In this document: piece by piece, positions 1,493 through 19,740 of the stretch
Position numbering within the stretch: the stretch's first letter is position 1
Layout: the number at the start of each line of letters is the position of its first letter
NCBI GenBank assembly: GCA_965112155.1
Contig: OZ218099.1
Origin: Podarcis liolepis
Taxonomy: Eukaryota
Strand: one strand, 5' to 3'
Length of the DNA: 64,000 bases
Notes under the pieces: generated by a model
Database searches by the model: none
What the model was told of the DNA's origin: nothing
What the model saw: only the letters and a program-made list of their open reading frames with translations
Made by a program: the position numbers and the translations under genes

Positions 1493-1653
1493 GTCAGTAT
1501 GGTGCTCATCACCAGGGCATGCCAGGATACCTTCCTGGTGCAATGCCTCCATATGGTCAAGGGCCCCCAATGGTGCCTCCTTATCAAGGTGGACCTCCTC
1601 GACCGCCAATGGGAATGAGACCGCCTGTAATGTCGCAAGGTGGCCGCTACTGA
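1493..1653 (+). CDS. ZNF207: ZNF207 last coding exon (GQYGAHHQGMPGYLPG...MSQGGRY*)
   Basis: ttaccttcacag acceptor, phase-1 junction compatible with the previous exon, TGA at 1651-1653; C-terminus matches recalled ZNF207. Confidence 0.96.
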
Positions 1654-1904
1654 TGCTACTGCAAACGCTCTAATAGGTTTGGAGATTAAACCTTTTCTCA
1701 TCTTGTGCTGTTAATATAGCCAAGCTTCCATCAATTAAAACTTCGTTGTGACTTTTAGGGGAGGAAAAAAAAATCTTTCCACATACAAGGAACTTTTTGG
1801 ACATTCTTATTTTACATGGCAAAATTTGTTTAGAATAATAAAACAGGAACTTTCCCTGATGTTGCAATTTATACTGTATGGCTTCTTTTTCATGTTTCAT
1901 CTAG

Positions 1905-1984
1905 GTTTTTAGAAGTGAAGTATAGTAAATATGGTTCGTTAAATTGTGAAGGCGCTGGAAATACATGAACGTACCATCTTAAAG
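1905..1984 (+). other. Candidate 3'UTR/alternative exon of ZNF207 with GC donor
   Basis: Pyrimidine tract ttctttttcatgtttcatctAG (AG 1903-1904); AAG|GCAAGT at 1984/1985. Confidence 0.5.
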
Positions 1985-2023
1985 GCAAGTTCTGTAACCT
2001 TACGTTGCTGTTCATAAAATCAT

Positions 2024-2084
2024 GCCTTCACAGCACTTCAGGTGCTGTTGGACTTCATGTCCCCAACAATAGTTTGGTGAGGGC
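2024..2084 (+). promoter_or_regulatory. Predicted four-way-junction RNA element, copy 1
   Basis: P1 GCCTTCAC/GTGAGGGC closes three hairpins: AGCAC/GTGCT, GGAC/GTCC, AAC/GTT; a related copy lies at 5445-5519. Confidence 0.65.
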
Positions 2085-2222
2085 TTTTATTGTTACCATC
2101 TACTTGTACACTTAAGTCTGAACGTGTAACGATATTTAATGTATTTAGAGTTTCCTGTTGCAGGGTTTATAAAATTGACCTACTAAGTTCACGTGACTTC
2201 CTGTACTGTTAAACTTTATTGT

Positions 2223-2228
2223 AATAAA
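2223..2228 (+). terminator. Candidate proximal polyadenylation signal of ZNF207 (others at 1837-1842 and 2321-2326)
   Basis: AATAAA followed by T/GT-rich sequence. Confidence 0.55.
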
Positions 2229-5200
2229 ATGAAAGAAAAAAATTGTCTTTTTATTCATGACCAGCTGTGGACAACTGCCTGAAGGTTTGTACTGATGCAT
2301 GCTATGGTAGTTTGTGGTATAATAAATACAGATTTCCTGATGCTACATTGATATATTCTGAATTATTTGAACTTCAAAGTCACTACTTTAGCTGTATGCT
2401 GTAGCTGACTCCTGAACAAGTAAATAGACCTGTACACTTATTAAGCAGTTGCAACAAAGTCTTGGGCTTAAGAAGACATGTTTTCCCCCCTGAATGGTGC
2501 ACTTTCTTAAGACTTCTTCATAGCTCACTGGTTATGATATTGGTGTGCTCTTATGTTTCCTATGTGTAAATGTGCTTCTACTAAGAAAATGCTATTGTAG
2601 AGCACATTTTTTGACCTTGCTTCGGTTCTTCCTCAGTTTAGAGACCTCAAGCTACTTAACCTAACATTTTTTTTAAAAAACATTTTTTATTAAAGATTTC
2701 TCTTTATAAAGCTTAGGTGCAAGCATTGGCTTCTGTAATAAAGGTGACCAGCCGAGAGGGATTCACCATAAAACATAGGTTGCAAAATATCAGATTAATC
2801 TTAATCAATTGATCAATTAATCTCTATCTGGGCATAGCAAAAAGCAGTCTGGTTAAAAACTACAGCTGAAGCTGCCCTGTGTGATTCAAACATTGTCCTC
2901 ATTTTGCCTCATGTCTGTGTGTCAAGAAAACGGCTGTGGCGAGGTTTCAGCTGTGTCTTTAACTGGACTCTGTCCCATTTATAAAACCTAGCAGGAAAGG
3001 GGGTAAAATTATCTCCTTGGATGACTGAGCAGTTGTTTCTCTCAAGGGGCATGATGTGTTTGTGAGGTTTTGCCTCAGCATTTTGAGCCTTGTTTCTTTA
3101 TATGCAGTACAAACCAGATCTCTTTTTTATTGCTTTCTGTTGTTAGCAAGATAAGTATTTCCATGGGAGCTGGGAATAGCAAAACTCCTGTTCCTACTTC
3201 CATCGGTTGATTTATAAAGACAAATTCTGTTACTGTCATTTTTGCACTCCACCCCCAGCTAATAGTAATATTGCATGTTAACAGCACCAATTTGTAAAGT
3301 AAAAACTATTTCCGATTTGCGTACAGTCTACTTCAGTCCTTTGCTTGGTCTCAAAAAACTTTATTGTTCATGCTTGAAGTTCCTTTGCTGCTTTCTGTAC
3401 ATCCTCTTTTTATATTTTCGTAACTTTCAAAAATGTCCTGCCTTCCATTAGAAACTTTGGCTTTGTGATCTTCACTCATTGTTTTAAGTTGTTTTAAATT
3501 TTCATTTTGAGAAATTTATTTTGCTGGAGTACTGTGTATTAAATGTCTGAGCAGTGTTACTGACACTTTGAATTTGCTTTCTGTTGACTGGCTACCCATT
3601 TCCCCAAAAGGTACTTCAGAATATGCAGCCATGTTCACTGTTTTCTAATTACTTCACCCCTTTAGCTGTTCATTTATTTCCTTTTGCACTATTATGATGG
3701 CAATTGTGCAATTATACATACCTATTGACCATTATCTGAAGAGGTTATGCTTGTTTTTCTCATTCATGAAAACACATATCTGAAGTTTTCTTTGACATTA
3801 CTGTCTCTATAGATCCCAGTACTAAAGAGGCAAACCATTTTGGCAATGGGCTTGCTTAAGCATGTGCTGGTAACTTTTCCTCAGTCTATGGCAAAATTAA
3901 ACACAATGATTCTTGTAACATGCTTCATTCCTAATGAGCCCATTAGAAAGCCTTTTGTAGCCCATACTGGCCATTTTACATTTAAAAGAACTAGTGTACA
4001 GTTTGTACCAGTTGCATCCAGAGGCTCCTGCTGGACAGAGGGGTAGGCAAATTTCCTCTTCAGCTCCTGCACCACTTTCCACATGGCTTCAGAGCTCATC
4101 AGAGCAGCTTTGCAAGAGGAAAGAGAAATTGGTACAGATCTCCTCCCCCTTTGTCCAGCAGGAATATGGGAACTCTGGATCCAGTAGATAGAATTTGATC
4201 AGAAATTTACTAATTTCTACTGTAGCCTTGTATTGCCCCTTTATATTACCTGGAGTGGCACAGGTTCCCCATCCCTGCTGTAGAGATTCACCTGTGCTGT
4301 ATGCTTGGGTTAGAGATAACTAATTCCGACCCCCTCGCTGGAGGCAGGCATTCTGAAGCCCGTAGGCCCCTCCATCTTCTAGATAGAGGCTTTGAAATCT
4401 ATTTGCTCTCGGGGGAAGAGTGCCAATCAGTTTCCGTCCTGCTTCCACTGAGAGAGGGTGCTCTTGCATCTGTTGGAGGTGCAAGGGAACAGCTTATTAT
4501 TTTCAGCATATATTCAAGGCCTTTATGTTGAACTTTCTGAAAATTCTGAATACAAGCTTGTTTTTAGAATAAAAAGTTCCGTAGGTGTTGCTAATCCATA
4601 GGCTGGGGTCATTCATGCATGTAAGCAAACCATGGTCAGTTATGAGAATGAATCTCAAGTCTCTTGTGATTTCCTCCATTCCTTCTCTTTTGTGCCCACA
4701 AGGAAGGAACAAAAAACTTAGTTCCTTGTGATATCTGAACATGGGGAACTGTTACTTGTTTACAGTATTTGTAATAAGAAGTGATGATCCAACCATGGTT
4801 TTGAGTTAATTGAAAGTAGAAGCTTTTTATCTCCTTGAGAGTCGCAAAAGCAGTAGGGTGCACAAAAGCCCATGGCTCACTCTCCAAATTGGAGACCATG
4901 GTTTCCTGCTACATCTAAACTTGGCCATTATACTTTATAATGATACTTTAACAAATTCGTACCTCTGACATTAAAAAAATGATTAATACAGTTGTCTTAA
5001 TAATTGTACTGGTCTAACTACTATGCAAGAGTGATGTAAAGTTTCTGAACAGCAGATTCGTTTTTTTACATTTTTCACTTTTACTGCATTAGTTCAGAAT
5101 ATTTTATCACTTGTAGGGGAAACACCCACTTTCTACTGAGTGTCATATAGCACTGGTCAAGCTGGAAGGTGAGCACTCTAGTTGGGGTTTTTTTTCTATA

Positions 5201-5363
5201 CATTAATTCTGGTTTACAGATTCCATATCTGATTTGTGTGGAGCTTAAAAGTTGAGACCAAATCTGTGCTTGATCATTGGAATTTTGTTAATTTTGATTG
5301 CATGTATTTTTAACTTAATTGGGTTGTGTTTTTCTAAAATTTAAATTTTTCTTCTTCCTATAG

Positions 5364-5418
5364 CCCTGCCATAGGACAGGCTGAGGCAGAGTCTCAGTGT
5401 TGCCCTGTTCAGTCTGAG
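5364..5418 (+). other. Candidate non-coding ZNF207 3'UTR exon with GC donor
   Basis: CTAAA branch-point-like motif, tttttcttcttcctatAG (AG 5362-5363), GAG|GCAAGT at 5418/5419. Confidence 0.55.
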
Positions 5419-5444
5419 GCAAGTGGGATTTATTTTATTCATTC

Positions 5445-5519
5445 TAGGGGCTTTCACAGCTTTATAGCTGTTGGATATTCATGTCCCCAAACTTGCAGCA
5501 AGTTTGGTGAAGGCTCCTA
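5445..5519 (+). promoter_or_regulatory. Predicted four-way-junction RNA element, copy 2
   Basis: 13-bp P1 TAGGGGCTTTCAC/GTGAAGGCTCCTA closes hairpins AGCT/AGCT, GGATA/TGTCC, AAACTTG/CAAGTTT. Confidence 0.65.
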
Positions 5520-8504
5520 TCTTTAATTTAATTTAGGATTTTTATAATCTTTTGATGGGCTCTATATTAATATTGATACTCTGACTTTAGTGCTTAAATT
5601 TATTGTTGTTAGCAGTCAGAAATCTTAAAATGAGTCAAAACATTTCCTGTTCAATTGTTAATCCCTCCATCACCTTACCCTCTGAAACTTGGTGTAGCGA
5701 TTCCATCTTTTAACAGCAAGATGACTGCCTTTGAAATGGTGCTGTGAATTTTAAAAGTCCAGGAGTTTTGTTGGCAGTGTTTAGTATTGTTAAGAAAATG
5801 CCTGTGTTGAAATCAGTTTTTCTCCACTGATACACACCTCTGCAGTTGGGGGTCAGTGACATCAACTTAACAGAAATTTACCTGAAACAATTACCTTATC
5901 ATTAAATATGTTATCTGTCATAAGTTAATATTAATGTAGAGCCCACAGAGTGGAGAAAAATGCAGTTGTGAGTTTCATAAGATGAACAAGTGAGATAAAT
6001 GTTTAGTAGGAAACATGATTCTTTCAACAGCCTGACTTTAAAGGTAAACAACTTGCCATATTTATGTGCACTGGAACATAAATGAGCATAGACGTTTAGG
6101 TATTCCTAGTGTAAGCAATTTTCCATATATTATGCACAGAACATAAAACAAACGTTTAGGGGTTTTGGTGCCATTTGAATCCTTCCGAGAAAATGTATTG
6201 CTAGACATGTGAAAACACATGCATTACTTTAAAAGAAAGATTTAACATTCTGAGGAAAGCTGCTGATAAAAGATTTTCAAGAATACTTGAGAATTTACTT
6301 CTACCCGCAACTCTTGCAACAAATCTAGTTTTCGTTTGAGAGAGTTTGAAGCTTTCACAAGGCACCTAGATTTTCTGGGTGGTCCCTTCAGTTTGCACTT
6401 GCAGAGCCTCAAACTGCTTCTTAAACTCTTACTTAGTTTTTTAAGAGTTTGGGAATTTGGTGTGAGAGGCTGTTTTCCCTTAATTCAAGGGATGGCCCTC
6501 CATAAGTTGTTGGGCTCCAAATCTTATCAGCACCCAGCCACTATTGTCAGTGATCAAGGCTTGCATGAGTTTTAATACAGCGTCATTTGGAGGGCTAAAA
6601 GTTCTCCATCCCTGTCTTACACAGTCCTCTCACCCAATCCTCAAAGTGCTTTTCCAAATTCAAGTGTCGATTTGTTTTCTGTGGCATCTATTAGCTCTGG
6701 CTGTAACTCATGTTTTCGTGGTTGCAGTTTTAAAACGCTTACTTAGAATTACCTTTGTCGTAATACCTAAGCAATACAATCAGCTGCCTGTCACTTCTCT
6801 CACATGCATGCAGAACCCTCTGCAAGCTTCTCATTTTCTCGAGAAATTGTAATCCAGAGTAAAGTTCACTGTGACTACCTCACATCTGAACGTAAACTGC
6901 ATTCAAATCCTCAATTCAGTGTATTGTCATTGTGTGTGACGTGACTCTTGACAATAATGGTGAAGATGGACTCCGCACTGAAGATGGAAAATAGCAATCA
7001 GCGTTTCTTCTACAATGTCCTCTGCTCTTGAGATCTGCTTTTTTCAATGTTTCCCCACCCCCCTTGGTCAATAGCCAATTTATTGAAACATGCTTTGTTT
7101 GGAGGGACTTGAAATAGAAGGGTTGTATTCATGGCTTCTGTTATCTTTTTGAGTATCCATGAAAAAATAGCTTGGGTGTTAGGATGCCTTTACTGTGTCA
7201 CCCTGTAATAAAATAGATTAAATAAATGAGTGCCTTGATCCAGTTGCATGATTTTAGACAGGAATCACTTGATAAGAGAACATGTTTAGCTTTGAATATT
7301 CCCTTCATCCAATCTGAGCCTTATTTTTTTTTACACTTCTGCAGCTGTCCTACAATCACATTTTCTAGCATATACCTAATGTAACTTTATGGTTTATGAA
7401 GAACTGAGAGATACTAGGATTTTGAACAAATGTATGTGCCTATTTCTTTATAATTACAGAGCAACATAAAAGTCGGTATGAATGTACTGCAAAGGAGATC
7501 CAAAGAGGTTTCATTGCTTTCCTTTGCTACAGCTTTCTAAATTTTGGCTTTAGTTCAGAAATTCCTCTACCTGCAGTACACCTATTTTCAGGACTTCAAT
7601 AGTAGTCTCAGGTGGTTCTTGGGGCATTGTGCTTCATTCATTCTGATCTCTTGACGTGAGACGCACGACCAAGTTGAACTTCAAAAAAATAAATTTAGAA
7701 TTAAGATTTAAATTACAATTCTGAATTGCAGTTCGCCCAGATGTTAATTTTTTTCTGCCATCACAGAACTTCAATATGCTACCCAAACTCTCGCATTGAA
7801 AAAAGAAGTTTTGGGATTTTGTACATTAGCAATTCAAAGGAAAACTGCCGTCATTGCTTACATAGTATTCGGTCCCCGCCCCCAGTTGCCCTTTAAGAGC
7901 TCTCGTGCAAAATTGTCAAATTGATTTTTCAGTGAAGAAGTCAATAAGCAGCAGTTTGAGAGTTCTCTGAGGCCCCTGCGGAGTGGAAATACTTTAGATA
8001 AGTTTGTGTACATCCATATGTCATGCAGAGTCATGTCTTAATTCGAAAGTGGGAAGAAAACAGGTTCCAGCTGTGTCTGGCTACCGTTTTCCTCTGGTCT
8101 GGGGTGCTGCTATTTGAAGTACTCCGACTTGACTGAAGTGTATTCAAGTAGATACAAGTAGTTAAATCAAAACTATAGATCATTTTGTGTCATAGGCATA
8201 CACTTGAGTTAATTTATACTTACAGTTTGGCAACTGCAAGGTGGCATTAATTCTGGCCACTCTTGCTATATTAGTATTATTTCAGTTTTAACTGAGGCAG
8301 CACTACTCGCTTTAAAATTATATGCATCTGAATCTTTTGATGGATGTTTATTGTTAAATGAAACCACACAATCACTTCACATCTTTTGTATAATAAAACA
8401 TTTAATATATAATTCAGTCCATATTGCTTGTTGACCACTGTGACTCGTAAATTTGTTTATAAAATATTTGATCACAGAATAATGTCAATTTAAGGAATCT
8501 TGTT

Positions 8505-8648
8505 GGGTAACGCAATAGCTCAGTCAGTAGAGCATGAAACTCCTAACTGCAGGGGTGTGGCTTGGAGCCCCAAGTTAGGCAAATGATTCCTGTATTGCAT
8601 GGGTTGGACTAGGTGACCCTCGTCCTTTCCATCTTTACAATCCTATGA
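8505..8648 (+). mobile_element. tRNA-Lys-derived SINE with CR1-like tail (lacertid POM/P.s.1-type), diverged
   Basis: TAGCTCAGTCAGTAGAGCATGA head, then GGTTGGACTAGGTGACCCTCG...CTATGA CR1-type tail. Confidence 0.8.
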
Positions 8649-11600
8649 ACACATGGTTACATTGTCAGTGCCAGCTATTAAATGTGAAGTAACTTGCTAG
8701 AACAGAGAGCATTGCAAAAGCATTGCAAGTGCTTTTTTTAGGTTTCAAGCTGCTTTTAGGTTTTTGAGAGATCATACATTTTGGGCATTTCCTATTCTGA
8801 ACTTTTGTAGTCTGTTTTGGTCAACTTAACCATTTGTTGTCCTGGGAAGCATACTTAAGAGAGCCATGCTGAAATGGGGGGTGGGGGACGGGACGGGATG
8901 ACGACACTCAACATAGAATCTCACTTCCATTCTTTTTGGCCTACTGAGTCTGCGCTGCCAACTTAATAGATTGGAATGTCTCACTGCACTATTTCCATAC
9001 CTTGTTCAGATAACGTATTTGCAGTGGAGCATTCTTACCAGTGTCTGGCACGACTAAATAAGTTGTTCCCTTCCTTAATTATGTTCCCTTAATTAAAAAT
9101 AAATGTGAAGGCACAAAAATGCCTTCACTAAAATGGCAGTTTTGAATCACTGATGTGTGCCTGGCAAGCACTGTTTTCAAAATGTCACACCTCTACTTCA
9201 CACAACAGTTGCTAAAAGTTAGGAGTTGAAGTTCAGTATAAATTTTACTCTTGTGCTTAATTTTAAGAATAGTCAACTCAGCTAACATAAAATATTTTAT
9301 AATCCTTTAGAAATTCAGCCAGCATTTGAAGGTTCAGTTATATTTTGCTTTCTCGGACTGTTAGTAGTAATACAAGTACAGGGCTTTCCAGTTCATTTTC
9401 ACTGATACCCTTGAAAGAACGCTACATTTTTTTTGGCAACTTGCACTGTGACCCTTTAACATTTGAATTGGTTCAATAAGTATATTTCAGAGTTCAGTTT
9501 GACGGACTACTTAGGAGTTAACAGTTGCTATAAAAAAGTGCAAGAATTTTGGTTTGTGTTTCGAAATTTAAAACTAAATTATGAATTAAGCTTTTTGGTT
9601 TAATATAATTTGTGTTTTTGTTGACTAGCAGCAGAATTTCAGCATTTGCTACTTACTGGTAGAGAAGAAAAAAATCCCACAGCACTGCCAGTACAGGTTA
9701 GTTTAATCTGTAAGTACCTGATGTTTGTTTGAAATCCTGTACTACAAATGCCATCTTAGTACATGAGGATGGAGCCATAAGTTATCTGGAGAGGGTTGCA
9801 TCTTACTACACCTAAAAGGGATAAATATTCACAGGCTCCGATTAAGAAAGGGAAGGGGAATTACAGTAAATAACCAATTTGGGTTTAGTGTATCATGTGG
9901 TGGCATTCCAGTCAGGGATCCAGTAATGCACTTTTTTTCTAAGTGGGAAATCATTTGACTAAGGTTGATTGGAAAATAACCTCAATCACATCTGGGGTGA
10001 ATGGGTGTTTATGCTATTAACAAAACGAGTAATTAAATATTCTGATTCTTTCTTCTTAGCAGTCCTTACAAACACCCATCAGCACAACTTTGTTAACTGA
10101 TGAGCACATCTTTTGTGATGGGCATTATTGATACGAAATGCTGTGTCCTCTGAAACCCTTGAATCTCAACACTTTAAAGCCTAGATAATTTTCTTAGGTA
10201 GTCCCTTCTCTCTTCAGTGGGTTCTGAATATTCAGTGTTCTTTGGTTATTTCTTAAAGTCGACTATGCATTTCTGTAGTGCTGCTGTTTTGCTTAAACTG
10301 GTGGTTTGTGCAAAAATGTAGTTGCATCTTAATTAGAACTGCATGTTTCTGTATCTTTAATTTTCTGCTGCCATGTTTACTAGCCAACTTAATTTGGTAA
10401 CATGCTTTTAAAAACCTGCTCTCAAAGTGGCAAACTAAAGCTGTTGGCAGTCAGTCATTCAAGTAAATAAAGTTGAGAAGTGGTCACAGCCCTTACACAG
10501 AAATATCAGCTTCTCCCACCAACTCTAGGTAAATCTGTTGCTTTATTGATTGCTTCATCAATATGAGACTGCTGCTGCCTCTGTGCCATTGCAGTCTCTC
10601 TCTTAATGCCACCTTATATTCATGTTCAGCAATCCTGAAACTTCTTTTTAGAATTGCCAAAATCTCATTGGAGCAGCTTTAGAATGCTTCTTAAGACCTC
10701 CTTGTTTTGAGCTGGGCTTGTTGGCTTAGAGTTAAGCTAGCACAGGGTTACTGGTCTCCTACATTTTAGTTTGATCGAAAAAAAATCCAGTTAATTGGTT
10801 CATTCTATGGTATTGGGTGTGTTACGGCATAAAAAGCCTTTGGATTGGGGAGTAGGCTACAACTAAAAATGATATTTTGTGATCAGCATGAGAAAACAAA
10901 GCTATGTATCATGCCTACCAACTTGTGGATAATGGAAATGCTTCTTAAAACTACAACAGATGTGGAAATTTAAATCTAGCTGCATTTCATAGTAAAGGTT
11001 GAAGAACCCAGAAGAACAAGTAGTCACTGTAACCATTCAATATATGAATCAAGAGTGTTGTTTAGAATGTCTTGGTCCCTTGTTTTTCTAGTATTTCTCA
11101 GTCCCATTTCTCTAGTGGTCAATATATAGTATTTTATAAGGATGAAAATCTTAAATCTGCCAGCTCTGTACAGTTCAGGTTATTTTGGGGCAGTGGGCAA
11201 GTGGACAGAACAAACAAAACTGAAACCCAACCGCTACTGTTGGCATTCAGTAGTTCAGCCACAAGAATTGAGTTGACCTAGGCATCATGTTAAAAATTTT
11301 GAGTTGCCCAAAATTAATTCACCTGCAAGAGAAACTATGAACATTAAGAACCTGCCATTCATTTAGGAGACTCTTTTTTTAGAACACATCCACTGTGCTT
11401 GTATTGAAAATAAGGGTATCTTGTAAACATAATTAAAATTTTGATAGTTTCTGTGTCTTAACTTTCCTTCTGTGCCGTTTACTTTCCTTTATACTAGGGA
11501 AAGTTAATACTTAAAACTACTTTGTTGATTACTAAGATAACCTGGTAATGCAGTTGTCACTGAAATCCCAAACTACATAGACACCTAATCATATGATTAT

Positions 11601-14426
11601 CCCCTAGTGATTTGTACAGGGCTCAGCTATGCCAGGGAAACACCTAATTCTTAAGGTGTGTGGTAGGATATGCCGCTTCACACAAGCACAACACTACACA
11701 AGGAGTGGCAAATGCAGTTTAGAACCCTAGCACAAGGAGTATCACCAGGATCATATTTATTTCTCCTCTGACTTGTGGATGTAGCTTGTATTTCAAGCAA
11801 TGCCTTAATGCTGACTAGATCATTGCTACTTGGTATAAACTGGTTAACCAGATCTAAATGGCTTTGATCATACACAGCAAGCTTGAATTTTCTGGAGGGA
11901 CGCACTAAACACTTGGGCCTGTTGATATATTGGATTGCATTTATATTTGTAAACAGCTCTACATAGTATGAAGCAGCTGGCTTTTGTCCTGCTTATTGCT
12001 GTGCAGCTGGAGTGACCTAAGTGGAGTATGTTTTCAGTTCCAAATACTGTAACAGATCCTGTGATCTTACTCTGATCATATGAAAACAACTTGTATAGTC
12101 CTGCAGACACCAGGAGAACCAGAAAGGGAGGGAACGTATTTCTGATCTGGCAACTTGGTAAGTATCTAGCCTCTTCAATGTTTTTTGTTGGTGATAAAAA
12201 ATAATCTGTATTTCATTCATGTAGCATTTCCCTGATGAATGGCATAAAGATGGGGACAGACAACTTGCTTATATGCTTTTGATTAAAATTATACAAATAG
12301 CATCGGATGTACGCTTAAGTAAAGCTGTGTATCTTTCATTCATTAAACTTTGAACCAGAGTTAATTACTGTGCCTGTCTGTTCTTTGGTCCTGAAATATT
12401 TGCACAAAATTGCCCCACATGGAATTGTATTTCATTGCGGGGGGCGGGGGTTGTCTTCATTTGAAAAGTTATGTAGTTGTAGAATTGCACTTACATTTTA
12501 TTTATTGAAAAATTACACCCTCCTTTCAATCAGATGATTCCCAAGTTGGGTTTACAAGCAACAGGCAGTGATGCTAAATCCCTAACGCACACATGTGTGT
12601 ATGCTAGGGTTGCCATATTTTCAAAAAGTAAAAACCAGGAAACCCCCCAAACCCCTTTCGGAAATTCCCCCCCGGACATCAATTCCGCCTTTGAAATTCT
12701 GGTAATGGCCAAGAAAATCCGGATGTATGGCAGATACCAGCAGTCTTAGTCCTCTTGACTGGTGGAAGAGGCTGGGACATGTTTCTCTTCTGCTTTGCAG
12801 CCCTAGGGCAACTGGAAAGTTGGCTGATTGCACATGTGAAAATTATATAAAGCTACTTAGGATGCAATCCCATGCACACTTAATTGGATGTAAATACCAT
12901 TTAACTCAGTGGAATTGACTTCCAAATAAACTTGCACTGAATTCAACTGTATTGAGTGAGAAAAGGCAAGACACTGGCTGAGAAGAACTCTAACGTTGCT
13001 TTTATCTGCACAATTGCACATGGTTATAAAGGCGGAAATGCATGTTCTCACGCAATGCAGTTGTGGGGGGGGGGAGCACAATTACAAAAGGGCTGGCCGC
13101 AATTGTGAAAACACTCCTTAAGAGAGAAATAAGGAGCTTGGCTTCCAGATATCATCCCATAAACCCAACAATAGCAGTCCCTGGAATTTAATGGGAACAG
13201 TGCATCTCCTTTGTACAAAGGCAACATAAAAAGCGGCTGGTGTATTGTGTCACAGTTGAAACTGGAAATCAGTATCTGAGAGGTGTCTTCTATCTTTCCA
13301 TATGCAATGTCTTCTCACTATGTTAGGATTTAATCACATATTTTTATAATTGTATAGCTAGAAGTAATACCAAAATTGCAGTTTCCCTCCAGAGTTTTAT
13401 ATTTGAAGGCATTTATTCGTGTTCCCTTGGCACCTCTTTTAACTTGAGTGCAGCAAGAGCTCTTGCTACCAGGTGGAAGGAGTGAATGGGTTGTGTAACA
13501 CTAGCAGTTAATAATACCTGGTCTGGAACAAATAAGATGGTGTCGCACATTCTTGTTAAATGCAACTGACTAAATCTGCATAGCTGCCACTCGCTAGGGA
13601 CCTCAAAAGTTGGAAGTTGCTCTGGCCTCCCTAGGCCTGTGGGGAGGGCGGGCTTGACTGTGCAGTTTGACTATGCTAAGAGTCGGCCTCATTGTCATAC
13701 ATAGTGGCTGCCAAATCACAAAACGGTGTTTGGAAATGTGTGTTGGAAAATAAAATATTGATCACTTGCCAGTGATGGGGCCAAGTGAACGTTGACAGGG
13801 CATTCCACTGCCTTGGCACCACTACAGAAAAGGCCCCCTTCCCTGCTGTTTCACAAAGGTACTCTGCATTTGAATAATAATATGAAAACTCTGAGCTTTT
13901 AGTTGACTGAAGAATGTAGCCAGCTTGGGTATATTGGGGCATTGCAAAGGGAGTGGAAGGGCTTTGTTTCTACTTGTGCTCTTCATTTCATAGACCAGTC
14001 CGTTCCCCGAATGTGAAGTGGGCATAGCATATTTACTAACTGCCTATAGAATGGCAACTGCCAGAACATGGAAATGGTTACAAATATTGAACACATGCCA
14101 CAGGTAATAGCATAGTGTTACAGACAGTGTTGTTAGAAAAATGGTCCTCAAAAGAGTGAGAGTGGCAAGAGGACAAGAGAAACATGACAACTCTGATGCT
14201 GTCTGGCATGATTTGATTGACTACAAAAATGTTGAAGCTCATGGAAGAGAGGAGTCAACAGTTTATAGCAGAGTTTGGTGTTTATAGCTCACCCCCTTTT
14301 GAGAGTAAAAGTGTGTCTTGCAATTAAAAGGAATTGGCAATATGTTCATGAACAAAGCTAAGCTAATCAGAAGTAATAAAACATTCCTTACCTGACCCAA
14401 TCTGTCTGCTTATTTTGAAAAACACT

Positions 14427-19587: not shown

Positions 19588-19740
19588 TAGAATCATAGCA
19601 TTGAAGAGTTGGAAAGGTACCACGAGGGTCATCTAGTCCGACCCCCTGCAATGCAGGAATCTTTTGCCCAACGTGGGGCTCGAACCCACGTCCCTGAGAT
19701 TAAGAGCCTTGTGCTCTACCAACAGAGCTATCCCAGTTCC
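19588..19740 (-). mobile_element. tRNA-Lys(CTT)-derived SINE with CR1 tail (POM-type)
   Basis: Minus strand reads TAGCTC..GGTAGAGC..CTCTTAATCTCAGGG..GGTTCGAGCCCCACGTTGGGC, then a CR1-like tail. Confidence 0.88.

Follow-up and report, generated by a model that had tools for sequence, protein, structure and literature searches.

Two predicted cloverleaf RNA folds in the 3' region of ZNF207 from Podarcis liolepis, each following a conserved GC-type splice donor motif

Layout of the ZNF207 3' region

We analysed a 64-kb window of genomic DNA from Podarcis liolepis, to whose numbering all positions given below refer. The window harbours the last coding exon of ZNF207, whose translation is the same as in snake ZNF207 proteins at 52 of 52 residues. 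Behind this exon two regions are found which exhibit, in the same order, a pyrimidine tract, an AG, a short exon-like stretch, a donor motif of the type AG/GCAAGT and a sequence predicted to fold into a cloverleaf. The ZNF207 gene of a distant sauropsid, present on the metagenome contigs L004 and L005, served as orthologue for comparison. The features under study are the following, with a slash marking the putative exon-intron boundary:

1493–1653, plus strand: last coding exon of ZNF207, ending in ...MSQGGRY, with the TGA stop codon at 1651–1653
1854–1904, plus strand: pyrimidine-rich tract ending in AG (1903–04), resembling a 3' splice site, in the 3'UTR; 50 of 51 positions identical in L005
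1905–1984, plus strand: exon-like stretch 1, 80 nt from the AG to GC donor 1; 96.2% identity to L005
1982–1990, plus strand: GC-type 5' splice-site motif 1, AAG/GCAAGT, putative intron start at 1985; 9 of 9 positions identical in L004/L005
2024–2084, plus strand: predicted cloverleaf copy 1 (four-way junction), 61 nt, in the 3'UTR; stems P1 2024–2029/2079–2084, P2 2030–2037/2041–2048, P3 2050–2053/2059–2062 and P4 2063–2067/2072–2077
2223–2228, plus strand: conserved poly(A) signal AATAAA, unchanged in L005
2321–2326, plus strand: second AATAAA, not conserved (AATGAA in L005)
5330–5363, plus strand: pyrimidine tract with AG (5362–63), resembling a 3' splice site; 34 of 34 positions identical in L004
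5364–5418, plus strand: exon-like stretch 2, 55 nt; 55 of 55 positions identical in L004
5416–5424, plus strand: GC-type 5' splice-site motif 2, GAG/GCAAGT, putative intron start at 5419; 9 of 9 positions identical in L004
5450–5514, plus strand: predicted cloverleaf copy 2, core of 65 nt, 5445–5519 with extended P1; stems P1 5445–5455/5509–5519, P2 5456–5461/5466–5471, P3 5473–5477/5482–5486 and P4 5487–5495/5499–5507

An earlier, sequence-only reading of this DNA had proposed that the two regions share one architecture, and the positions of the AGs, exon-like stretches, donors, AATAAA signals and TGA all turned out to be as it had described them. The cores of the two cloverleaves start 3,426 nt apart (2024 versus 5450), both right after the ZNF207 stop. 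Copy 1 with its 61 nt precedes the AATAAA at 2223, while copy 2, comprising 65 to 75 nt, is located 3.2 kb past it, again behind a GC donor motif.

Genuine GC-AG donors closely follow the consensus at their remaining positions. With the sole exception of the C at +2, the two ZNF207 motifs fit the consensus from −2 to +6 so that, by sequence, the near-perfect match typical of a functional GC-AG donor (AG/GCAAGT) is found at both sites. The C at +2 is retained in all four sites, that is in both motifs of both species, although a T would create a perfect donor. From donor to fold the spacing amounts to 39 nt in copy 1 and to 31 nt in copy 2. An occlusion of the donors by RNA structure was considered and rejected, as the segments composed of exon and linker fold no better than shuffled sequences (z from −0.3 to −1.4). 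The claim that exons and flanks of the two regions are not similar holds true: outside the fold their likeness is confined to the shared 8-mer AGGCAAGT, whose presence near both folds is to be expected by chance, according to our estimate, in a few per cent of such pairs.

Position 1984 is situated 331 nt past the TGA of ZNF207. As this exceeds 50 to 55 nt, the geometry of a 3'UTR intron triggering nonsense-mediated decay (NMD) is present if a junction is formed at 1984. The conserved poly(A) signal follows donor motif 1 at a distance of about 240 nt; near module 2 no poly(A) signal is present, and downstream of 5418 no acceptor or terminal exon was identified. Splicing from 1296 to 1905 would lead to the alternative C-terminus ...PPHGF followed by a stop codon. 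This candidate was discarded since such an isoform occurs in none of the 188 retrieved ZNF207-family proteins, just as none of these 188 has an alternative C-terminus pointing to the acceptor at 1904. Named ZNF207 orthologues were recovered, among others, from bird, snake, platypus, frog, shark and lamprey.

Structure and conservation of the folds

The predicted structure of both copies consists of a stem P1 which closes three hairpins. That both adopt the same cloverleaf, as the sequence-only reading had it, agrees with their folding z-scores (−3.1 for copy 1 and −4.5 for copy 2, none of 200 shuffled sequences being as good) and with the recovery of copy 1 by a covariance model of copy 2 only (26.6 bits, E about 3e-4). 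The predicted fold of copy 2 has an energy of −30.4 kcal/mol and is retained in a context of 162 nt. Local alignment of copy 1 with copy 2 yields a score of 45, compared with a maximum of 28 for shuffled sequences and with 27 for the best of the other tile pairs within 1660–8000. A covariance model built from four sequences scores copy 1 at 56 bits and, with filters off, detects no third copy in the 64-kb window; a search of this kind had been suggested beforehand. The assertion that the pair carries no signs of a transposon likewise withstood inspection, as there are no terminal repeats, flanking repeats or tails and two copies only in the 64 kb.

The fold contains G-U pairs and is specific to the sense strand, the covariance model scoring the reverse strand at 18 to 21 bits versus 106. 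Across the four sequences 97% of the cells are paired compared with 35% to 54% once the partners are slid, and the pair changes comprise two pairs altered on both sides and eight additional pair types, in a sample that in effect represents two paralogues in two species and whose covariation is weak when taken alone. The sequence and the pairs adjacent to the junction are invariant between the paralogues and between the species. Distally, P2 and P4 are of unequal length in the two copies, P4 comprising 4 to 5 bp in copy 1 versus 9 bp in copy 2. The two folds are an ancient tandem pair of paralogous sense-strand RNA four-way junctions.

Only two blocks align between the window and the sauropsid orthologue, namely 1662–2369 in the 3'UTR and 5267–5578 around copy 2. 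Within them the identity amounts to 98–100% for the tracts resembling 3' splice sites, 96–100% for the exon-like stretches, 100% for the GC donors and 95–98% for the folds. The UTR upstream of the tract at 1854–1904 is 86% identical to L005, and the linker and the 30-nt flanks of copy 1 are 79–80% identical to it. Conservation in an orthologue, which the sequence-only reading had named as a check, thus extends over the entire modules (95–100% in this one distant sauropsid), including the C at +2. Beyond block 2 no conservation is visible in 1.2 kb of L004. Well-conserved 3'UTRs also harbour stretches that are conserved for other reasons.

Copy 1 shows no substitution in L005 and a single 1-nt deletion within a loop. 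Copy 2 differs in L004 by four substitutions, one of which is located in the P3 loop and three of which are located in stems. The latter convert A-U to G-U, U-A to U-G and G-U to G-C; hence, pairing is kept, on the plus strand only. A human origin of L004 and L005 was ruled out, since they lack Alu k-mers and their exons are 92–100% identical to bird and reptile ZNF207 but 82–96% identical to primate or other mammalian proteins. Besides this orthologue, no further locus was found in the metagenome, genome and viral scans. Three additional metagenome matches (L001–L003) proved to be chance matches in GC-rich bacterial DNA, and fold-pattern scans of genome contigs and viral contigs yielded nothing.

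Prior description and the protein ZNF207

The sequence-only reading knew of no description of this element. This has to be corrected since both folds had already been reported from the earliest genome-wide survey of conserved RNA structures (EvoFold; Pedersen et al. 2006, PLoS Comput Biol 2:e33, Fig. 6), which ranks two "clover-shaped folds" of ZNF207 first and fourth among the long clover-shaped predictions and assigns no function to them. According to the same paper, an alternative splice variant carries the longer fold in its intron, substitutions across vertebrates support the folds, and the central stems are nearly identical with compatible or compensatory changes while the loops differ by substitutions and indels. 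The pair described here is found in the same gene and in the same layout, with two folds after the ZNF207 stop, a shorter one in the 3'UTR and a longer one downstream (61 nt versus 65–75 nt), and its copies likewise display near-identical central stems along with differing loops. It represents the sauropsid orthologues of the ZNF207 clover folds of 2006, the match comprising gene, layout and stem pattern. Exon-like stretch 2 is consistent with the splice variant mentioned by Pedersen et al. (2006). In contrast to the present analysis, that paper contains neither a function nor GC donors, upstream tracts resembling 3' splice sites or a link to U1. In the searchable literature we found no function for the ZNF207 clover folds, twenty years on, and no link of these folds to GC donors. 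Hence, while the fold pair has been known since 2006, the location of each fold just after a conserved GC-type donor looks new.

ZNF207 itself was reported to be an auxiliary factor of U1 snRNP, which it binds through its zinc fingers, and to control poison exons of the U1 cofactors LUC7L and LUC7L2 (Behera et al. 2025). This role provides a rationale for the suggestion of the sequence-only reading that ZNF207 regulates itself. The further suggestion that it does so by binding the fold fared less well: in the 2025 paper on ZNF207 its RNA binding is largely devoid of sequence specificity, which speaks against a direct binding of ZNF207 to the fold.

Possible function in 5' splice-site recognition

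We propose tentatively, and with a confidence that stays a little short of an even balance, that the folds are cis-acting pre-mRNA elements setting the use of the GC donors by U1 snRNP, possibly with feedback by ZNF207. Each fold would belong to a module made up of pyrimidine tract, AG, short exon and GC 5' splice site, being placed 31 to 39 nt into the would-be intron, and would set the frequency at which U1 snRNP engages the GC donors. Donor engagement would in turn determine which of two outcomes prevails: either the transcript is cleaved and polyadenylated at the AATAAA at 2223, giving the normal mRNA that carries fold 1 in its 3'UTR, or it is read through and spliced from 1984 to 5364 and onward. 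The latter would drop the poly(A) sites and put an exon junction 331 nt past the stop, and the resulting isoform is predicted to be NMD-prone or to possess an otherwise different 3' end. Given its role as cofactor of U1 snRNP, ZNF207 may limit its own abundance by a negative feedback, which would operate via U1 at the GC donors and not via binding of ZNF207 to the fold. We infer the use of these exact donors, the effect of the folds on them, NMD and feedback alike. A more far-reaching version, which we regard as rather improbable, sees the folds as intronic elements whose dedicated task is to enhance or switch 5' splice sites of the GC type, and which since early vertebrates would have formed a homeostatic loop with U1 snRNP and ZNF207: high activity of U1 and ZNF207 would cause the donors at 1985 and 5419 to be used, the poly(A) sites to be bypassed and an unproductive ZNF207 isoform to be made. 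Overall, the element is real and already known, and its mechanism is plausible but unproven.

Several known systems offer points of comparison. The USSE is reportedly a splicing enhancer of SNRNP48 and RNPC3 which binds U11 snRNP and activates an upstream acceptor by exon definition. Like the ZNF207 arrangement, it features tandem conserved motifs resembling 5' splice sites towards the 3' end of a gene whose product associates with an snRNP. It recruits the same snRNP, giving rise to an NMD-prone or long-3'UTR isoform and to feedback, which in the case of ZNF207 we only infer. The USSE has two close U12-type motifs without any four-way junction, whereas the ZNF207 donors are of U2 and GC type, 3.4 kb apart and each accompanied by a fold. 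Polyadenylation is inhibited by U1A through the polyadenylation-inhibition element (PIE) and by U1-70K through sites resembling 5' splice sites, for instance in the late 3'UTR of BPV. In these systems a structured or 5' splice-site-like element, located in the 3'UTR of a gene for a U1-associated protein and ahead of its poly(A) signal, controls 3'-end formation, as may hold for ZNF207. The PIE, however, mimics stem-loop 2 of U1 and directly binds U1A, while the ZNF207 fold shows no Rfam match to U1 and the RNA binding of ZNF207 is reportedly not sequence-specific. The autoregulation of TARDBP, SR proteins and LUC7L/LUC7L2 resembles the present case in its highly conserved non-coding exon-like blocks and in a junction, putative in ZNF207, more than 50 to 55 nt past the stop; to our knowledge, none of these depends on a paralogous pair of four-way junctions behind GC donors. 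The cloverleaf at the 5' end of enteroviruses is an H-type four-way junction which binds PCBP2. With it, as with mascRNA and menRNA, the ZNF207 folds share a compact four-helix junction inside a longer Pol II or viral RNA but neither a T or D loop nor any resemblance in sequence, so that the analogy is one of shape only.

The same arrangement may be read differently. The GC motifs could be docking sites of U1 snRNP which are rarely or never spliced, U1-70K inhibiting poly(A) polymerase at 2223 and exon definition possibly activating the AG at 1904 or 5363, while the folds present or stabilise the snRNP; 3'-end processing or nuclear retention rather than NMD would then set the output. Such mechanisms, of U1-70K on poly(A) polymerase and of the USSE, are established in other systems. 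A donor-like motif about 240 nt ahead of a conserved poly(A) signal, the persistence of C at +2 where T would give a perfect donor, a conserved pyrimidine tract and AG before each motif and the role of ZNF207 as U1 cofactor all suit this explanation. We nevertheless judge it unlikely, as a poly(A) signal is lacking in the vicinity of module 2, GC donors with such a consensus are normally functional splice sites and Pedersen et al. (2006) mention a genuine splice variant surrounding the longer fold. Of a similarly low probability is the alternative that the folds are protein platforms of the finished mRNA, affecting stability, localisation or translation independently of the GC motifs. Copy 1 would then serve in the 3'UTR and copy 2 in an isoform whose 3'UTR is longer, the splice-like signals nearby being coincidental or serving another purpose. 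This alternative is favoured by the place of copy 1, which belongs to the canonical 3'UTR and precedes the conserved poly(A) signal, by the invariant junction-proximal sequence as would be needed for sequence-specific recognition, and by the Znf207 3'UTR segment which Frith (2023) lists, among RNA-binding-protein genes, as conserved across bilaterians. Yet it leaves unexplained why copy 2 is found 3.2 kb past the poly(A) sites in a discrete exon-like block of 100% conservation and why the distance from the GC donor motif to the fold is maintained in both copies.

Very improbable is an excision of the folds as tRNA-like structures by RNase P or RNase Z, as in the release of mascRNA from MALAT1, which would produce a small RNA and leave the transcript cleaved and destabilised. 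In spite of the cloverleaf shape with its closing stem of 6 to 11 bp and the precedent of mascRNA and menRNA, ARAGORN in its standard mode finds no tRNA, the sole call in its permissive mitochondrial mode was off-register, concerned one copy and fell on the opposite strand, and at neither copy is there an Rfam match to a tRNA or a mascRNA-type RNA at E values up to 10. Moreover, the junction is almost free of linker bases, sequences resembling T or D loops are absent and the length of P4 varies between the copies. On the basis of these ARAGORN and Rfam results, an origin from a tRNA or a NUMT was rejected. Still slightly less probable is a conservation at the level of DNA, as an enhancer or other regulatory DNA, or a descent from tRNA-derived repeats, the RNA fold being incidental in either case. 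Block 2 does form a discrete conserved non-coding island and cloverleaf shapes are known from SINE heads, but the required G-U pairs imply that pairing works on the sense strand only, the substitutions within and between the copies preserve pairing, and supporting substitutions across vertebrates were reported by EvoFold (Pedersen et al. 2006). In addition, terminal repeats and tails are missing, and there are just the two copies in 64 kb with no others in the metagenome, genome and viral scans.

Returning to the proposed setting of donor use by the folds, each orphan fold is now placed in a larger conserved module with a GC splice donor, and this module, together with the role of ZNF207 as U1 snRNP cofactor reported in 2025, provides a concrete hypothesis for an orphan structure. 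If the proposal is false, the folds are still a 3'UTR element of strong conservation, with a binding partner yet to be found. If it is true, a structured-RNA layer would be added to the self-regulation of the machinery which recognises 5' splice sites. A switch of the GC donors would be the first function for the top-ranked clover folds of EvoFold, and these would be the first structured RNA known to gauge the activity of U1 snRNP.

The two fold-bearing modules

At its start, the window carries the three final coding exons of ZNF207. Downstream of these, the sequence-only reading had described two modules about 3.4 kb apart, each consisting of a pyrimidine tract with AG, an exon-like stretch, a GC donor and a segment resembling that of the other module, as well as two AATAAA hexamers. 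All of these features are present in the sequence where it had located them:

1493-1653, +, final coding exon of ZNF207, ending ...MSQGGRY, with TGA at 1651-53
1903-04, +, AG after the pyrimidine tract of module 1 (sequence)
1905-1984, +, exon-like stretch 1 (sequence)
1982-1990, +, GC donor 1, AAG/GCAAGT (exon/intron; sequence)
2024-2084, +, look-alike segment of 61 nt, copy 1 (fold)
2223, +, first AATAAA (sequence)
2321-2326, +, second AATAAA (sequence)
5362-63, +, AG after the pyrimidine tract of module 2 (sequence)
5364-5418, +, exon-like stretch 2 (sequence)
5416-5424, +, GC donor 2, GAG/GCAAGT (exon/intron; sequence)
5450-5514, +, look-alike segment of 65 nt, copy 2 (fold)

Folded alone, each copy adopts a four-way junction in which a closing stem (P1) encloses three hairpins (P2, P3 and P4) connected by single-base linkers. 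The fold energies amount to -25.9 kcal/mol for copy 1 (z-score -3.1) and -30.4 kcal/mol for copy 2 (z-score -4.5), and none of 200 shuffles folded equally well. The fold of copy 2 is retained within a 162-nt context and its P1 can be extended to 11 bp (5445-5455 with 5509-5519). Since G-U pairs form part of the pairing and since the covariance model assigns 18-21 bits to the reverse strand compared to 106 bits, the cloverleaf is a feature of the sense-strand RNA.

Local alignment of the two copies gives a score of 45, compared to a maximum of 28 among 300 shuffles and of 27 for any other pair of tiles within 1660-8000. In addition, when copy 2 is the sole input of a covariance model, the model recovers copy 1 at E ~3e-4. 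As judged from these sequence comparisons, the copies are related beyond chance. An unfiltered search with a model derived from all four available sequences revealed no third copy within the 64 kb, and no further copies emerged from two scans of genome contigs and one of viral contigs.

Conservation in a second sauropsid

Five loci in metagenome contigs matched in a pattern scan. Two of these, L004 (Ga0065711_1038586) and L005 (Ga0181612_101445), harbour the 3' end of ZNF207 from another vertebrate; the remaining three are chance matches in GC-rich bacterial DNA. Human origin of L004 and L005 is rejected, as they lack Alu k-mers and their coding exons are nearer to bird and reptile than to primate. 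With ZNF207 proteins of palaeognath birds and snakes these exons share 92-100% identity, compared to 82-96% with those of primates, pig, bat, dog and platypus. Hence, the contigs are taken to be sauropsid. In the last ZNF207 exon the window is identical to snake proteins and L005 to those of tinamou and kiwi; we infer that the two species probably stand on opposite sides of the lepidosaur-archelosaur split. L004 and L005, contigs of 8-18 kb which represent the same locus and are identical across the compared stretches, originate from two unrelated JGI metagenomes and are presumably host or contaminant DNA.

Within 1660-14000 of the window only two blocks align to this orthologue, 1662-2369 (87%) and 5267-5578 (91%), plus a 31-nt island. 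Nothing else aligns between the blocks, and 1.2 kb of L004 downstream of the copy 2 block contain no more conserved blocks. The island (4993-5023, 93.5% identical in L004/L005) lies isolated about 340 nt upstream of the copy 2 block. The AATAAA at 2223 is conserved, in contrast to that at 2321-2326, which reads AATGAA in the orthologue; similarity extends past the latter to about 2369. The remaining 3'UTR is 83-86% identical, and the module elements compare as follows.

Identity of module elements in the orthologue
Pyrimidine tract and AG: module 1, 98%; module 2, 100%
Exon-like stretch: module 1, 96%; module 2, 100%
GC donor including the C at +2: module 1, 9/9; module 2, 9/9
Linker from donor to fold: module 1, 79%; module 2, 100%
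Cloverleaf: module 1, 98%; module 2, 95%
Flank after the fold: module 1, 80% (30 nt); module 2, 73% (41 nt)

Copy 2 differs from its orthologue by four substitutions, one within the P3 loop and three within stems, all three of which preserve pairing (A-U to G-U, U-A to U-G and G-U to G-C). Across four sequences, i.e. two paralogues from two species, 97% of cells are paired, compared to 35-54% with slid partners, and two pairs are altered on both sides. With this sample the covariation evidence for the folds is supportive but thin. The cloverleaf feature is genuine, and selection on it is strong.

Alternative pairings and other sites

Within exon-like stretch 1, the 9 nt TGTGAAGGC (1945-1953), unchanged in L005, are perfectly complementary to the P1/P2 5' strand of cloverleaf 1 (2024-2032). 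Their pairing would dissolve this cloverleaf and loop out GC donor 1. A match of this length occurred in 12 of 500 shuffles and, as module 2 lacks any equivalent, a switch of this kind is only a thought. In copy 2, the P4 5' strand ACTTGC (5491-5496) complements the GCAAGT at +1 to +6 of GC donor 2 (5419-5424), and the P4 3' strand is another GCAAGT. Chance alone readily yields a match of 6 nt (345 of 500 shuffles), and copy 1 has no such complementarity.

Hypothetical joining of the donor after 1296 to the AG at 1904 reads G-F-stop (TAG at 1910-1912) and would cost ZNF207 its final 53 residues; none of 188 retrieved proteins of the ZNF207 family has the resulting C-terminus. Between the modules, the non-conserved sequence contains an inverted repeat (4026-4047/4142-4163; 22 nt, 91% complementary, 94-nt spacer). 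An Rfam tRNA match at 19673-19730 (-), covering model positions 8-63 of 71 at 30.4 bits and thus barely above the gathering score of 29, is not called by ARAGORN and may be a tRNA-derived repeat or pseudogene. In sequencing runs X1-X14, which comprise only 72-145 million letters, 47-71% of the words sampled from a 5.8-kb stretch are found, introns and intergenic sequence included. For random shotgun data this is unusual; it might reflect conserved-element capture or pre-mRNA-rich RNA.

Published clover folds and possible function

The sequence-only reading knew of no description of this element. A full-text search revealed, however, that the cloverleaf pair is the ZNF207 pair presented by Pedersen et al. 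(2006; EvoFold) in the section "New Clover-Shaped Folds" and in Figure 6, where it is put forward as a new family of functional RNA. As an object it is therefore not new. The searchable literature yielded no other paper connecting ZNF207 with clover folds; Frith (2023) places some Znf207 3'UTR segment among bilaterian-conserved non-coding DNA. Neither the consensus-like GC donor, which precedes each fold by a short and constant distance, nor the conserved 3' splice-site-like tract and short exon-like stretch preceding each donor appear in the text of Pedersen et al. (2006), and any novelty may lie in their association with the folds.

According to Behera et al. (2025), ZNF207 is a U1 auxiliary factor whose zinc fingers bind U1 snRNP, which regulates LUC7L and LUC7L2 poison exons, and which contacts RNA largely without sequence specificity. 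In view of these properties, a reading centred on U1 is attractive, in which the GC donors would serve as sensors and the folds as cis-acting helpers or gates of them, the outcome being either polyadenylation at 2223 or read-through with 3'UTR splicing, which would place an exon junction 331 nt after the stop codon. Feedback would thereby run via U1 rather than via binding of the fold by ZNF207. That the modules act in the choice of GC donor and poly(A) site is a serious possibility to which we give slightly less than an even chance; the complete U1/ZNF207 feedback loop we consider unlikely.

Several other explanations have to be weighed against the U1-centred reading. U1 may dock at the donors without splicing and either inhibit polyadenylation or work through exon definition in the manner of the U11 USSE. 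The folds may also act as a platform for a protein in the 3'UTR of the mature transcript. A tRNA-like RNA excised from the transcript is poorly supported: Rfam returned no match at either copy even with E up to 10, ARAGORN predicted no tRNA at either, and its permissive mitochondrial mode made a single call, off-register, on the opposite strand and at one copy only. A DNA-level or repeat origin of the conserved copies is contradicted by the strand-specific pairing and by a copy number of two in 64 kb. We regard the association of the folds with conserved GC donors in the gene of a U1 cofactor as a hypothesis worth pursuing, and one directly testable on existing public data.
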